Assembly: GCA_907165135.1 (NCBI GenBank)
Contig: OU015567.1
Span: 372,001-436,000 of the forward strand
Direction: 5' to 3'
Source of the DNA: Oikopleura dioica
Lineage: Eukaryota > Animalia > Chordata
Length of the DNA: 64,000 nucleotides
Every line of letters starts with the position of its first letter. Positions within the stretch are counted from its first letter, which is position 1. Made by a program: the position numbers and the translations under genes. Below are positions 17,099-64,000 of the stretch, piece by piece. The notes beneath the pieces are model-generated. The model made no database searches and was not told the DNA's origin. It saw only the letters and a list, made by a program, of their open reading frames with translations.

Positions 17099-19351
17099 TT
17101 ATAGGGAAGTTGTTTGTGAGAAATCTGCGGTGGCATCGTTTCTTTGAGAAATATCTTTTTCATCCTCAGAAATTTCATTCCCTTCGCTCTCAATTTTCGA
17201 AAGATCTTTATTTTTCGCAAAATAAGAAGCAGCCAAGTAGCACAATCCAGCCGTTGCTTTCATCGTCAGTGCTTAAAAATGAGTTTAAATAATCAACAAT
17301 TTTCTTACGCAAGACGAGAAAAGCATGAACAAGCCCTCGATTGTCATGAATCAAGCAGTTTCCATCGGAACCGTCTTTCATTTCACTCCAGACGACGCAG
17401 GCTTCGTCGATGACAGCACCAACGACGATCGGAGCAGTGATGCTTCCGAGCAAGCACAAGATCAGGTTCAAACTCGCTGCGGTCGTCTTTTCGTCAGAAT
17501 TGAATTGGCGCAAATAAGCCGTCTGAAATCAAAATTCTTATTTCTATTTTAATCAAGCCGAAGATAACCTTGACGATCGGCAAGGGAGCATACGAAAACG
17601 CAAAAACGAAAAAGAAGCAAATAGTTATTTTCCAAAGAGAATCGCACTCAATAGCGTTTTCACAAAAGCCATCAGCAAGAGATTTGGCCACAGAATCCTC
17701 ATTGTCGCATCGACAATTGGTCAAATTGAAGTCGAGACAGCCAGCATGGCAAGGCGAAAAGTAAGTGATCGCTGATTCCTGGTCGCAAACTGGTTCGAAA
17801 ATTTCGTTTTGACAGGAACAACCCGAACGGCAAGATGATAAGTTGGAAAAATTTGAGAGAATCGAGTCTCCGTTTTTGTCGAAAACGCCGAAAATTTCTT
17901 GATTGTCGCAGGGAAATCTGTACATGCTCGGCAAGTACACCACCGATGCTGCCATTGAAGTCAGGAAACAAATGAAAAGCAACTTGCTGCTCTGCAATTT
18001 GAAAGTTCCAAAGGGAATCGGGATCAGACATCCAATAAGACCTCCGAGAGCGCATACGCCGCCGCAAAGTCCAGCTACAGAGGCGGAAATGTTGTATGTT
18101 TCTTGAAGAAGTTTCATTCCGTAGCCCATCAGAGCAGCTTATTTTAAGATTTTTATCGCCAAATTTCTTGATTTTTATTAAAAAGATTCTTTTAAAAAGT
18201 CAGAATGAGAAGATTTGAAAATCTTTCCTGTTGTAAAAAGATCGCAAATTCCACCAATCGAGCAAAACCACCAACAAGCATTTTTGAGCACAATTTTCGT
18301 CGCCTTCAATTCGCTCCCAATATCCGTTTTCTCGCTTCTTTTCCTTCCTGGCGCCCCGGGTAGAACTCTCGGGTAACCAAACAGAAAGGGGAAAGTGAGA
18401 CAAGCAATAAAGAACTGTATCAAAAATGGCAGCCACCAGGCCCCGATCCAATTTGGATCGCTCGGGTCAAGATCAACGGAGCCGTGTAGAGAAATATCCG
18501 TCCAGATGCCAAGGAAAAAAACGCTGCTGAAAAGTCCAAGCAGAGATCCAGCGACAGTACCGGCGTTGCAGATTGTTATATTCACTCCTCCCTTTTGCTC
18601 GTTTGTTTGGTCCTCTGCGGCTGTTACTCCTTTAAATAGAAGGTTCAAAATATAGCAAATCTTGATCTAACTCGCCTCTTGTCCATAAGACACTGTTACC
18701 GATTCCAGTAAGAAGCCCAGCGATGATAAAACAAGCAAGCCAGCTGGACTGATCAATTTCTCCAAAGAACTGATTATCTTTAGAAACAGAGCAAATATTC
18801 GGTTCAGACTCCTCCGCGCCTAAAATCGGAGCATTCGGAGTTACAAAATGCGGAATAAAATTGAGCGCCGCACCGAGAGCAATGGCTGCTCCGGCTGGAC
18901 CCAAAGAGCCGCCAAGAGAAATCTTCTTCGCTAACCAACTGGATGGAAAGGCAAAGGCAAGATAGCCAATGTCATAGGCAGCCATGATTAAGCCGGATTG
19001 CTTCGAGTTGAAACCAAAGCGTTTTTCAATTGTTGAAATTGAAGCTAAAAGAGCGCCGTATGGGCCGAATCCAATTGCGGCGATAATCACGGTGAGGAAG
19101 AAAACAAACCAATTCATCGAGTTCAAACACTTGAGAAAAAGTCATTTCCTAGTAAGAATCATGCAAATTTATACCTGCAAAAATTTAAAATAGAAAAAGA
19201 AAACATATCTTCCTTCTTCTTCTTTATTGCTCTGATTAGTTTTTTTAACATGATTTTTCTCTGAAAATTCTTTATTGAACATATTTTCTTCTCTCATTTT
19301 AAAGCAAAAGGACGGCTCTTGAACTTTTTGTAATTTTCTGTTAGACTTCAT
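17099..19351 (-). CDS. SLCO: Organic anion transporting polypeptide (OATP/SLCO)
   Basis: ISTIEKRFGFNSKQSGLIMAAYDIG; DPNWIGAWWLPF; Kazal-like CRSGCSCQNEIFEPVCDQESAITYFSPCHAGC; LGSITAPIVVGAVIDEACVVW; start approximate. Confidence 0.9.
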
Positions 19352-57935: not shown

Positions 57936-58149
57936 AATCGCTCCTTTGAATACCTTGCTCTTCTGTACGCTTTTGTTTGTTGATTCGCTCTGATTGTGAT
58001 TCTCCTTTTCTGCCTGTTCTGCTCTTCAAATTTCAAAAATGAAAAAAACTGATTCTGAAAGTTCAAAACTCGAGTTCAACTTTCAAGTTCAACTGTGAAA
58101 CCAAATAAAATCTCAATTTTACAATCATTCATTTTCTTTTCTTGAAGAA

Positions 58150-58613
58150 ATGTCGGCTTTATTCCCCGCGTCAGATTCTCTGCCCATCATTCAATACGTC
58201 ATCGAATCGGATCCAGACATTTTGACCACGAACGAAGTGATCAACGGCAGATCCAGTCCTGAAATTTGGCCAGAAGTCATCCCAGGTGAATTTGCCTGTA
58301 TTAAACCTTGCTCATTTCTTTCACAAGGGTCGAATCAATTCGCAGAAAACGTCGCAACAACCAACCAAGCAGGCAACGAGCTCGACCGTGAGCTAGAAAC
58401 GAACAAAGTGAAGAAACTCGCAGAGCTTCAACAACTTTCCGACCAAGAAATCCTCCACAAGATGAAGAAATTGAAGCAACGAGCGTACAGGTAGCCTTTT
58501 TACTAAACAAAGAAGACTGAAATAATTCTAGCATTGGTTTAACCGAAGCAAAAGAAGTCGAAAGAAGCAAAATGCTGAACATCTTTGGCGATTTCAAGCA
58601 CCAAATCAATTAA
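58150..58613 (+). CDS. LIN52: LIN-52 (MuvB/DREAM subunit)
   Basis: Spliced RSSPEIWPEVIPG...LAELQQLSDQEILHKMKKLKQRAYSIGLTEAKEVERSKMLNIF matches LIN52 RASPDLWPEQLPG...AYQLGLDESREMTRGKFLNI; two short in-phase introns. Confidence 0.9.
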
Positions 58614-58645
58614 TTGAGAAAAACTTTCTTACTTTTCTTCTGCCA

Positions 58646-58724
58646 GGGGCTTGGTAACTTGTGTAGAAAACCTGAGTCAGGGTCCTAAACGAGCTGACTC
58701 AGGTTTTACACAGTTTCCGAGCCC
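58646..58724. mobile_element. MITE family A (shortest copy), between LIN52 and MOCS3
   Basis: gggcttggtaacttgtgtagaaaacctgagtcaggg ... ctgactcaggttttacacagtttccgagccc. Confidence 0.85.
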
Positions 58725-58795
58725 GCATTCTGCCTGTAAATAAATTTCCACGTCGAAATATTTGAATCCCTAATTTTTGTTCATCGAAATTAAGA

Positions 58796-61700
58796 ATGGA
58801 AATAATCACTTGTGCTTCACAAATCCCGACAATCGAAAGAACCCGCAGAAGTTTGACTCAAGCCGAGTTTCAGCGTTACTCGCGACAACTGATTCTTCCA
58901 GAGCTCGGCCGACCCGGTCAAGAAAACTTGATCAACTCGTCCGTTCTCGTTGTCGGCTGTGGCGGACTAGGATGTCCAGTGATTCAGTATTTGGCAGCAG
59001 CAGGAGTTGGTACTTTTGGATTAGTCGATAATGACGTTGTTGATACTTCAAACATACAGGTAAGCTTTGTAAAAGGGTACTCTTTTGCTTTTTGTTCCTA
59101 AATAATCGCGGAAAATCGTCAAATTATCCCCTTTTTGAGCTAAATTTGCATGTTTTTCGGCAAGTCAGTTTTACATTCGTTGCGAAAAATGCTCTTATTT
59201 CATCAATTTTAGCCATATTTTGCCTTTCAAGAGCTCCAAAAGTGTATAAAATGAGTATTTAGCGTCAAATTCTACACATGGAATCAGACAACGGGAAGCT
59301 AAAAGTCCTCTCCGCCGCAGAAACGATCAAAAGCCTCAATTCTACCGCTACTGTTTTCCTTTTCAACTTGACAATCGACTCTTCCAACGCCCAGCAAATC
59401 GTCAATCAATTCGATTTAGTAGTTGATTGCACGGACAACGTCGCGACGAGATATTTACTCAACGACGCTTGTTTTCTTTCACAAAAATCGCGAATCCCGC
59501 TGGTTTCGGGCGCCGCGCTCCGCTGGGACGGGCAAGTAACGGTTTACAAAGAAGAGAGTTGTTGCTACAGATGTGTTCATCCGAATCCGCCAGCGCCAGA
59601 ATCAGTCACGAACTGTTCCGATGGAGGGGTCATCGGAGCAGTTTGTGGCGTCGTCGGAGCTATTCAAGGGAATTGGGTCAATAAGGAGATTTATTTTTAT
59701 TGAGGGTAGGAAAACCTGTAAATGTCTTTCAAGCAGTTGATTAAGCCAGACTTCTGTTTATGCAAATACTCATGTCTTCTTCTGAAAAACTGAAAATGGT
59801 TTTAAATTATATTAGTTGATAGAGGAATAATCCGACATTCGTTTGTCAATAATGAACAATTATTGTACTTACTAAGACTTAGTAATACTAAGTATTATAC
59901 AGTATAATATACAGTATATAAACTGTGATATTTATCGAAATATTATTAATTCTATAAATTGTTTGGGATGTTTAATGCGCACGCTGTCCCTATTTCCAGA
60001 GCGCGAATTCAGAAAGGCGCGTCACCCCGGGCGCCGTCCAGCCCCAAGCGTGGACTTCCAACCGCGGGCGTTCGCCACCCAGCGCCAGGAGTCCGCGAAC
60101 GTCCGGCTCGGGGTTTTCTTCAAACATGGCCACCCACCGCGCAGAAGTCCGGCGCCCGAGAGCGCGCTCGGACTTCCACCGCACATCCAATTTTTCGAGA
60201 CCCTGATTATACTTACTTCTACCAATGCGTAATTTTTCTGAAGTCTTTGGAGCAGATGACTTCTGATGTATCTTTCCATCACTTCGCTCTGAAAGCCGTT
60301 TCCCATTCTATCTTTTACGGCTACCAAGTCTTTTCCGTAGGTAAAAATGATCAAAATTGAGAGCGTTATTTTCAGTCTCATGAGAATTGAGTTTTTATTG
60401 TGGAGACAGGACAGTATTTGAACCCTTTTATACCGTTGTTTTTTATATATCGACCATCGATTGAACAATTGCATTTGCACGAATCGAATTGACATGAAAA
60501 TGTCACTTTCTGGTCCTGAATATGTGGCTTCTGCCTCAATCAGGTCGCTCATTTGACTGTTGTTTTGTGCCTACTTGGCCAGAATTTATTCAATTGGAAC
60601 GAATGAACTTTCGAATGTCTTTAGCACAGGAAAATGAGCTTCTCAAAATACATCTCGTCGCCTTAACGAGCTTGACGTCGTTTTCTCTCTGTTTTAAGAA
60701 CTGAAAACAATTCAAAACCGGGCTTTCAATAAATTTGAATACCTTGTGAAAAGTGTAATCCTTTTGCAAAGCTACTAACTTGGCTGTTTTCGCGATTCGA
60801 TGAAGCTCCTCATTCACGATCGGATTCGTAAAGTATTTCTGTGTTCATTCAAGTTTTGATTCTGAAAATTTTTTACCTTGTGATTGCCAAGCTGGTAGAC
60901 ATCCTTGAAATATTCCTTCATTCCTTCACCGATGTTCGTGTGCCCATTCGCGGGAAGGCCGTCGCCATTCGAAACTCGAAAATGGGCGAAAATCAAGAGA
61001 AACACTTTTGTTTTTCGCATTGCGCGTGCAACGATGGTGCAATGCGTTCCGTCTTCACTTTTAATCGCGTGTCAGCTTATTTATTCTACGAATAAACTTG
61101 ATGCATAATCTTCTGAGATCTTTACCCATGAAATATTACTGACATTCGAAAGGACACGAGAGGACAACAATGAACCACAATCGGGTGTAGGGCGTCCAGG
61201 CTCACAATTGTGAAAAAATACAGTTGCAATTAAACTTGTTGATTTCGATTGGCTTCCATTTTATTACAATTTAAACAGGATGAACAAACTGGTACATCTT
61301 TTGTTTACAGAAAGACGATTTGACCAAAAGACAGTTCGCTGCTTTTGCTAGCCGTAATTGCTTCTGTCTTTCTTCCAAAAACTAAAACCATCAGGAAGGC
61401 TTGCTTTTGGACTTGGTCTTACGTTGTGAAGAGTTGGATCTTTTTGTAGAGCAGAAAGTTTGCCAACCTTTGCCATTCGACCAAGAACATTATTTGTAGT
61501 CGGTTTCGTGAATTTTTTCTTGAGAGAAAAATATTACTCATTCAACCTGTTAGTTTCAATATGATAATTTCAAAAAAATTTTGCGGGTCTGGAAATCGGA
61601 AAAAATCTAAAAGTGCAGTTTTCTTCAGCTCGTTGAGACGAGTCGAATGGTGTGTCAAACTCTTGAAAACTCCAAGGATTGACCGGTAAACCGGCTAATT

Positions 61701-63122
61701 ACCGGAAAATACGTTTCCGGTCGCCGTTTTCGTTCTAGAAATGCTAAAATGACGATTGAACCTGTAAACTGATCCTTATGGTTAGTTTTACTGTGGGCAA
61801 AAAGATATCGGTCAAATATGAAACACAACCTTGATTAACGATTAAAATTCTAAATTTTGTATGTATTTTGTTGTTGCTGCGCCTTCCTAATTTTCGGTCC
61901 CATTTTCATGTGAAAATACAATTTTGGTGATAAGCATGTCATGGTAAGAGATATGATTTTCATTTTTTAGCCCACATAAGAACTTTACATAAGAACTTTA
62001 CACATAAGAATTTTTTGAAATTATCATATCTTTTCGCCACTAAACAATTACCCTCAACAACGCGATTTTTTGGAGGTCTGGCTGGTCGATGTTCGCTTTT
62101 AACATCGGGTTCGTGAAGTGTTTCTTTAACATATTGCGAGCCTTTTAATCAAGTTCTTTTTACCTTGAAATTTCCGCGTTGGTAAACATCCTTGAAGTAC
62201 TGTTTCATTTTGTCGCTCTGGAAGCGGAAATTCGATGGAAGATCATTACCATTCGCCGCTTCAAAAAGAAGCAAAATTGAAAAAAGTATTTTAGTTTTCT
62301 GCATTTGATCGCTCTATTCGGGACTCTATCCTTTTTATTGCTCGTTGTTTCAAGATTCTGTTCATGCATAACCTCTTATCAGAAGCTCTTAGAGCTGGTG
62401 AATAAAGAACAGTCGTTAGTTACAGTAGATTTCCCACCATGACCCCGAAAAAAGCGACAGAAGCGTTGAAAATCCTCGCAGGCATAGAAAACTCTTTGTG
62501 CGGAAACATGATAATCTACGACGGTCTCAGGGCATCTACGAGGACAATCAGACTCCGACCGAGAAGGCCAGAGTGCAAGCTTTGCGGAGAAAAGCGAGAA
62601 ATTATGGAATTAATCGACTATGTTCAGTTTTGCGGAATGGCGGCGAACGACAAGGATAAAGGCTTGAATTTAGTGCCTCCAAATGAAAGGTGAGTTTTCT
62701 AGGGCATCAATAGTAGCGATATTAAAAAAATAAACAATTTTTCAGAATAGAAGTCAAAGAAATAGAAGCGCTGAGAAAACGAGGTGGACTGATTGTCGAT
62801 GTAAGAACAGAAGTGCAATTTGAAATGTGCCGTCTTCCTTTTGAAACGTTCAATTTTCCGCTGAAAAAATTGAAAAGAAAACCGGAGCTTCTGGAAGAAA
62901 TAATTGAAGAGAGAAAAGCAGAAGAAGTCGTCTTCCTTTGTCGGAAAGGAAACGATTCGCAACTTGCCCAGGTGTTTTGGAAGGAACATACGAATGGTAA
63001 GAAAACTGAGAACAAGAACGATTCTAGCGCTTTTTCGTTTAGGAAAGATGAAAACAAGCGACGTCAAAGGAGGCCTGTACGCTTGGCAGGAAGAAATCGA
63101 CAGTTCCTTTCCTTTGTACTAG
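58796..63122 (+). CDS. MOCS3: Adenylyltransferase/sulfurtransferase MOCS3 (Uba4): ThiF plus rhodanese
   Basis: RYSRQLIL; [12 protein letters not shown]; [16 protein letters not shown]; CYRC...NCSDGGVIG; ATEALKI; CRKGNDSQ; [17 protein letters not shown]; 2786-nt intron at 59669-62454. Confidence 0.95.
59697..60381 (-). CDS. Nested secreted peptide precursor C (85 aa; exons 60381-60217, 59789-59697)
   Basis: [55 protein letters not shown]|[30 protein letters not shown]; GT-AG phase 0; TATAAAAG ~45 nt upstream. Confidence 0.7.
60590..61020 (-). CDS. Nested secreted peptide precursor B (116 aa; exons 61020-60877, 60838-60743, 60700-60590)
   Basis: [23 protein letters not shown]...[15 protein letters not shown]|KYFTNP...[17 protein letters not shown]|[36 protein letters not shown]; all GT-AG phase 0. 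Confidence 0.85.
61271..62304 (-). CDS. Nested secreted peptide precursor A (139 aa; exons 62304-62164, 62123-62052, 61518-61423, 61381-61271)
   Basis: [23 protein letters not shown]...[15 protein letters not shown]|KHFTNP...ALLR|KKFTKP...[17 protein letters not shown]|[36 protein letters not shown]; all GT-AG phase 0. Confidence 0.85.
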
Positions 63123-63289
63123 ACCGAAATTCTTCAAAATGTTAAAATACATACAATAACCAGATGTTTAAAAAGAAACAAGGCCTTGTTTATTTGCAGG
63201 AAAAAAACTAATTACAGTACAGGCAGATTCTTGTTGAATAATTACACATCATCTTAACAGTAAACTTTGCAGGGAATCGCTCATCCGCA

Positions 63290-63960
63290 CTAAAATGGCA
63301 TTCCAATGTTGTTAAGATGTCTGTTCAGCAGTTTGTTCCACTTTTTCATTCTGTTCACTTGGTGGTTGTTTTTTCGTTGCCCTTTGCAGCTGTCCAAGTA
63401 TCTAGAATCGAGGTTGTAAAGGGGTGAAAAGAAAGGGATGGTGGATTACCGTTGAGCCCATTTTGAAAGTCCCGTCGTAAGTTGTTTGGTTCCAACTCTC
63501 GGGTCAACATTATCCAGTCGTAGATTTTCCTCATCGTCGAATCGTTCTTCTGGACCACCGTGGGGAAGGCTTGGGTCGTAGAAACCACATCTGTCGAACG
63601 CTGATCTACAATCCGACTTTTACCCGATGGAATTAATGTTTCTTTTCTTACCGCATTCTTTGGATGTTCGTGGCGAATTTCATCTTCCAGTTATCCTGTG
63701 AAGGAACGTGATCAAACCACTTATCCAAAAGTTCGTATGAAAATGCCTCTAAAAAACCAGGTAGAGAAAGAAATGAGGCTTTGAGGCTTACCGAGTGTTC
63801 GAAGTCGCGCTTTTGGATGACGATTTGGCACCTTCCTTTGATCGAGGGAATCGTAGCTGCTCTCATCGTAGTTGTACGGCTGGATGCTTGTCAATTCAGT
63901 TGGCAAGGAAGCAGCGTCGAGGCAGACAGCAAGAAGGCCGATTTGCGAAGCGATTTTCAT
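63290..63960 (-). CDS. Secreted hypothetical protein (four exons)
   Basis: MKIASQIGLLAVCLDAAS...; spliced FDRCGFYDP...GTKQLTTGLSKWAQRYLDSCKGQ...RMKKWNKLL...*; introns in phase. Confidence 0.75.
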
Positions 63961-64000
63961 ATTTATCGTCTTTTGGACTTTTTCGTTTTTTGTGGATTTG

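Follow-up and report, generated by a model that had tools for sequence, protein, structure and literature searches.

A tandem trio of orphan genes for small basic, predicted secreted proteins antisense within a putative MOCS3 intron of Oikopleura dioica

We describe three minus-strand genes, here called A, B and C, in a 64,000-nucleotide (nt) stretch of DNA from the chordate Oikopleura dioica (the window: positions 372,001 to 436,000 of the forward strand of contig OU015567.1; all coordinates below are positions within it). The locus lies on chromosome 2 of the Okinawa genome OKI2018_I69 (assembly GCA_907165135.1), and the public gene list used for comparison covers about 427.6-438.0 kb. A and B are diverged paralogues, C is a shortened relative under purifying selection, and all three lie antisense within what is evidently a single MOCS3 gene. 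The reading that we give a somewhat better than even chance is that they form a tandem trio of taxonomically restricted, separately transcribed genes in the MOCS3 intron, whose small basic secreted products act as whole proteins by binding polyanions.

Rebuilt from the sequence, the models agree with a first-pass annotation of this DNA in every coordinate, exon length and protein, giving three minus-strand genes of 139, 116 and 85 amino acids (aa) that are interrupted only by phase-0 GT-AG introns.

Gene A, minus strand, 139 aa, exons of 141, 72, 96 and 111 nt
62304-62164, minus strand, gene A exon 1: start codon, predicted signal peptide and YFKDVYQ motif
62123-62052, minus strand, gene A exon 2 (72 nt): part of the public model, an internal and truncated copy of the 96-nt exon (KHFTNP...)
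61518-61423, minus strand, gene A exon 3 (96 nt): ALQKD motif
61381-61271, minus strand, gene A exon 4 (111 nt): C-x7-C pair and stop codon, with AATAAA at 61265-61260
Gene B, minus strand, 116 aa, exons of 144, 96 and 111 nt
61020-60877, minus strand, gene B exon 1: predicted signal peptide and YFKDVYQ motif
60838-60743, minus strand, gene B exon 2 (96 nt): rebuilt model identical to the public model
60700-60590, minus strand, gene B exon 3 (111 nt): C-x7-C pair, with AATAAA at 60590-60585 overlapping the stop codon
Gene C, minus strand, 85 aa, exons of 165 and 93 nt
60381-60217, minus strand, gene C exon 1: predicted signal peptide fused to the equivalent of the 96-nt exon of A and B
59789-59697, minus strand, gene C exon 2 (93 nt): AATAAA at 59701-59696 overlapping the stop codon and a second AATAAA at 59695-59690

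The six introns all begin with GT, end with AG and are in phase 0. Four of them measure 38-42 nt, which fits the median intron length of 49 nt in this genome (PMC8008620), and the remaining two are 533 nt (gene A) and 427 nt (gene C) long. Besides the chosen frame, the exons have no open frame, or almost none. The translation of A matches the public hypothetical protein g4020 letter for letter and that of B matches g4019 (Oidioi.mRNA.OKI2018_I69.chr2.g4019.t1), both among the models called by AUGUSTUS with intron and exon hints from RNA-seq (PMC8008620); at the position of C the public gene list of the locus holds no model. Exon 2 of gene A could be a cassette exon. Since all internal exons of A and B are symmetric (phase 0-0), an A transcript lacking exon 2 would encode a 115-aa protein with exactly the architecture of B.

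The paralogy of A and B, proposed in the first-pass annotation from shared motifs and identical exon lengths, is borne out by a pairwise E value of 5e-31. Leaving aside the 72-nt exon 2 of A, the two proteins align end to end with 39-46% identity and have in common the 96- and 111-nt exons (96/96 and 111/111 nt), the YFKDVYQ and ALQKD motifs and the C-x7-C pair, conservation being distributed along the entire mature chain. The KHFTNP... sequence of A exon 2 resembles both KYFTNP... of B and KKFTKP... of A itself. The kinship of C, likewise suggested earlier, is marginal by BLAST (E 0.003) and emerges from the profile comparison: C scores 15.5 bits against a hidden Markov model (HMM) built from A and B, a value that none of 20,000 shuffles of matched composition reached, whether or not the signal peptide was included, the best shuffles scoring 10.9 bits for full-length C and 12.4 bits for its mature part. 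The HMM alignment sets LQKNYALVE|FF of C on LQKDxTxHx|FL of A and B with the phase-0 intron at the same aligned position, and sets the single cysteine of C on the second cysteine of the C-x7-C pair (C.KDI..F). On these grounds C is a shortened third member of the A/B family, which would have derived from an A/B-like gene by losing the first mature module and a short stretch with one cysteine.

Signatures of selection are found both between the paralogues and between populations. In the A-B comparison, the proportion of nonsynonymous differences (pN) is 0.32 against a near-saturated synonymous proportion (pS) of 0.66 (Fisher p 4.5e-7); the three codon positions have identities of 0.64/0.74/0.46, and different codons encode 23 of the 53 conserved residues. 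A protein search with exon 1 of C led to a 61-aa open reading frame (ORF) in the Tara Oceans metagenomes, on a contig of 586 bp (ERZ908079). This contig spans the complete gene C of a different population and runs on into the antisense MOCS3 exon. The Tara allele keeps the frame, the start codon, the GTAAGT..TTTCAG splice sites, the stop codon and the TATA block. Exon 1 differs at 13 nt, distributed 3/1/9 over the codon positions, with four amino-acid changes (pN 0.034, pS 0.259), and exon 2 is identical at 93/93 positions. Over the whole coding sequence (CDS) pN/pS is 0.12 (p 2.6e-4), and gene C is under purifying selection; a between-population substitution check had been suggested at the outset, and for C it could thus be carried out. 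The intron of C shows ~10 differences in 70 alignable positions, and the 28 nt between the stop codon of C and the MOCS3 exon show ~6, indels among them. The Tara intron is only 77 nt long and lacks the following segment:

59859-60208, minus strand, 350-nt insertion in the gene C intron, GC-rich in part and missing from the Tara allele

As the CDS is intact, the coding capacity of C has outlived a large intronic change. No terminal inverted or direct repeats were found in the C intron, and the intronic and intergenic DNA has no second copy in the window. Part of the insertion (60176-60208) receives partial matches from RNA reads of a diverged lineage (described below), with loose ends on both sides, like a dispersed repeat. 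Partial reads of the same kind, loose at both ends, occur at 61612-61649 in the 533-nt intron of A, probably another repeat fragment.

The host of the cluster is evidently one MOCS3 gene, not two. The public annotation gives two genes here, one for a 234-aa ThiF protein and one for a 193-aa Rhodanese protein. On the plus strand, positions 1-61 and 68-197 of the Pfam ThiF profile are matched upstream of the cluster, ending at 59667/8, and the profile resumes at positions 195-237 directly downstream of it, at 62454/5. This continuity across the gap argues for a single MOCS3 gene and upholds the antisense nesting put forward in the first-pass annotation.

58796-59668 and 62455-63122, plus strand, the two parts of MOCS3 on either side of the cluster: one gene, split in the public annotation
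59669-62454, plus strand, putative MOCS3 host intron of 2,786 nt, predicted GG..AG, joining ...GAIQ to ATEALKIL..., with A, B and C antisense within

The join 59668|62455 is the only in-frame one that restores ...GAIQ|ATEALKIL..., which implies a 2,786-nt intron that starts with GG and ends with AG. The MOCS3 intron is thus probably of a non-canonical GG-AG type; non-canonical introns make up ~11% in this assembly (PMC8008620). A predictor blind to such a site would have ended the upstream model within the intron and started a new one downstream, which may account for the split public model. The Tara allele bears on the exon end as well. Indels right after CAAG shift the frame of the annotated read-through tail, which is not conserved, whereas the 156 nt of MOCS3 exon before CAAG contain three differences, all apparent third codon positions by eye. 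This contrast supports an exon end at that point. In the Tara allele the MOCS3 donor would read GA.

Each of the three genes carries an AATAAA within 0-6 nt of its stop codon, and the seven AATAAA on the minus strand all lie either at the end of a CDS or at most 70 nt upstream of a start codon. The first-pass annotation had ascribed a TATA-like box to each gene. This holds for C, which has a canonical TATAAA; A and B have AATAAA-type boxes only. A and B have in common an identical octamer 60-88 nt before their start codons, which may be a common regulatory element.

60427-60432, minus strand, TATAAA box of gene C, 46-51 nt before the ATG, within a 24-nt block that the Tara contig shares unchanged
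62364-62371, minus strand, TTATGCAT octamer upstream of gene A
61108-61101, minus strand, identical octamer upstream of gene B

The suggestion that the genes have their own promoters is plausible, the TATA box of C being kept in a second population.

As far as annotated proteomes and the collections searched go, A, B and C constitute an orphan family, in line with the earlier statement that they match no known one; other O. dioica lineages may have copies that are not annotated. An exhaustive phmmer search with B of 1.84 billion representative proteins drawn from public genomic and metagenomic data yielded B, A and, as the only other hit, a spurious repeat protein, an 842-aa tandem-repeat translation with a repeated match to a short HGHTNIG stretch. 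A profile search found A and B only. Pfam gave no match above threshold, the sub-threshold hits to UBact and KRBA1 being chance; PatG_D (PF18047), at 22 bits against a gathering cut-off of 27, was treated as chance too. Scans of Joint Genome Institute (JGI) metagenomes with the A/B alignment and with the Tara fragment of C gave no match, as did an exact look-up of the exon ORFs in the sequence collection and Rfam over 58000-64000. In the ESM Atlas, B reached a best feature score of 0.86, to integrases and in the range of noise, and the Atlas structural model has a predicted local distance difference test (pLDDT) score of 0.44. The protein g4019 is mentioned in no paper that we found, and the literature search met with no Oikopleura work on antimicrobial peptides (AMPs) or neuropeptides bearing on the family.

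The N-termini of all three proteins combine a basic n-region, a 9-residue hydrophobic core (Kyte-Doolittle mean 2.6-3.2) and small residues at -3/-1. With a signal-like segment of 16-19 residues, the mature parts of A, B and C would be 120, 97 and 69 aa long (8-14 kDa), with isoelectric points (pI) of 10.2, 9.8 and 9.9 and net charges of +16, +9 and +7. The signal-peptide-like N-termini described at first thus fit by rule, and the mature parts are basic (pI 9.8-10.2). Lysine and arginine make up 19-20% of the residues, and no N-x-S/T sequon occurs in A, B or C. A and B have two cysteines each, the C-x7-C pair noted earlier being present in their C-terminal exons. As a side observation, a weak tblastn match to the signal-peptide region of A (17896-17997, minus strand, E 0.045) is probably just another signal peptide.

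The first-pass annotation took these proteins for processed peptide precursors, a reading that the sequences disfavour. Some features do recall prohormones, whose bioactive peptides are released by cleavage at dibasic sites: the N-termini resemble signal peptides, the proteins are of precursor size and contain some dibasic pairs, KK or RK pairs sit at exon junctions in A and B, C has an RRR, and a disulphide-bonded peptide could come from the C-x7-C loop close to the C-terminus. However, the junction sites, while real, are not part of any enrichment: dibasic pairs number 3 in A, 2 in B and 2 in C where shuffles average 4.6, 3.6 and 2.6, which places them at or below chance, and KK pairs at junctions are to be expected from the lysine and arginine content. 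Most of the pairs are KK, which is a poor proprotein-convertase site. None of the three sequences has a G[KR][KR] amidation signal or repeated peptide units, and A-B conservation extends over the whole mature protein instead of being limited to a short peptide. We hold the prohormone reading to be improbable. The low dibasic counts, the lack of amidation signals and repeats and the conservation along the whole chain together favour whole-protein action, and A, B and C are probably not precursors cut into peptides.

The main rival is that the products are host-defence effectors, cationic helical proteins secreted whole or acting through their C-terminal parts against microbial membranes in the gut, the epithelium or the house. 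Like cationic alpha-helical AMPs, they have predicted signal peptides, a strong net positive charge (+7 to +16), predicted helices and tandem paralogues, and immune effectors are typically tandemly duplicated and quick to diverge, A and B being 39-46% identical. In the last exon, the highest helical hydrophobic moment over 18 residues exceeds that of shuffles marginally in B (p 0.03) and C (p 0.05), but the last exon of A is not amphipathic (p 0.87). Moreover, mature parts of 69-120 aa exceed the classical helical AMPs, an anionic pro-region is absent, cleavage sites are not enriched and no AMP family shows any similarity. We regard host defence as unlikely on this balance. Quite unlikely, in our estimation, is a related alternative in which A, B and C are young lineage-specific secreted ligands or effectors, with a basic C-terminal module (the C-x7-C loop in A and B, a single-cysteine dimer in C) released or displayed toward a receptor or microbes, and with expression coupled to, or interfering with, MOCS3 transcription. 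Orphan status and fast divergence of the paralogues would also suit reproductive proteins, such as secretions of sperm, egg coat or gonad, likewise a small, secreted, fast-evolving and lineage-restricted class. Nothing specific speaks for this, and proteins under sexual conflict usually show weaker purifying selection than C does (pN/pS 0.12). We consider a reproductive role very improbable.

We therefore return to the favoured reading of whole proteins that bind polyanions. A, B and C would be transcribed separately, antisense in one ~2.8-kb MOCS3 intron, and each would give rise to a small secreted protein with a pI of about 10, probably rich in helix and without N-glycosylation. Outside the cell the intact proteins would most likely be bound by their positive charge to polyanionic material, for which the matrix of the house or mucus and microbial surfaces are candidates. 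The largest sink for orphan secreted proteins in this animal is the house-producing epithelium, and orphan genes are noted as markers of oikoplastic cells in a 2026 single-cell preprint (10.64898/2026.03.31.715263). Among known proteins the oikosins come close, the secreted, larvacean-restricted and highly glycosylated house proteins without homologues elsewhere (10.64898/2026.03.31.715263). A, B and C are likewise predicted to be secreted, appear larvacean-restricted and have no homologues in other organisms; they differ by the lack of any N-x-S/T sequon. B matched nothing beyond A among the 1.84 billion representatives, a set in which the presence of the published oikosins was unchecked.

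Several observations weigh against this reading. The signal peptides were judged by the n/h/c pattern and the -3/-1 rule only. AlphaFold2 run on the A/B alignment predicts helices with a pLDDT of 41.9, so that the helical prediction is weak and a fold search was not justified. C has one cysteine only, and the comparison of A and B is one between paralogues, not populations. In addition, three bulk oligo-dT runs (2026) and one single-cell run with the same species label, mapped to 58700-63200 at 90% likeness, gave 0-13 partial reads per run at two repeat-like spots and zero depth otherwise, MOCS3 exons included. Because depth is zero even on the MOCS3 exons, these runs must stem from a lineage too diverged to map; O. 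dioica is known to comprise several cryptic species (PMC11067885).

A further possibility is that at least one of the models does not represent a functional gene, being an unexpressed prediction, a decaying copy or, in the case of the 72-nt exon 2 of A, a pseudo-exon. In its favour are the lack of supporting reads in these runs, which left the MOCS3 exons bare as well, the absence of C from the public annotation, and exon 2 of A, a shortened duplicate with an intron of unusual length (533 nt) behind it. Against it stand the selection signatures in A/B and in C, the start codons, GT-AG introns and stop-proximal AATAAA, all intact in each gene, the retention of C in a second population with its TATA box, and the origin of the A and B models in a pipeline hinted by RNA-seq. 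We consider this possibility distinctly improbable. Separately, a word search of sequencing runs with the DNA of gene B (60590-61020) gave shares of 0.40-1.00, all of these runs being guessed as DNA, and no RNA run was listed for the stretch. Five further runs share 0.40-0.76 of the gene B words; the label of one names another organism, and three, with shares of 0.4-0.5, come from the study of the source genome and could be RNA.

The extracellular apparatus of larvaceans is unique and many of its proteins have no relatives, small orphan secreted proteins being the least-annotated part. New here are the unannotated gene C, a correction of the MOCS3 model and the evidence that the family is under purifying selection; only the discovery of a specific activity for A, B and C would open a new class of biology. 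The locus also illustrates how automatic annotation in this genome is led astray by non-canonical introns and nested genes. Beyond MOCS3, at 63290-63960 on the minus strand, an annotated 177-aa gene without a Pfam match or tblastn similarity to A, B or C encodes a protein with a hydrophobic N-terminus.

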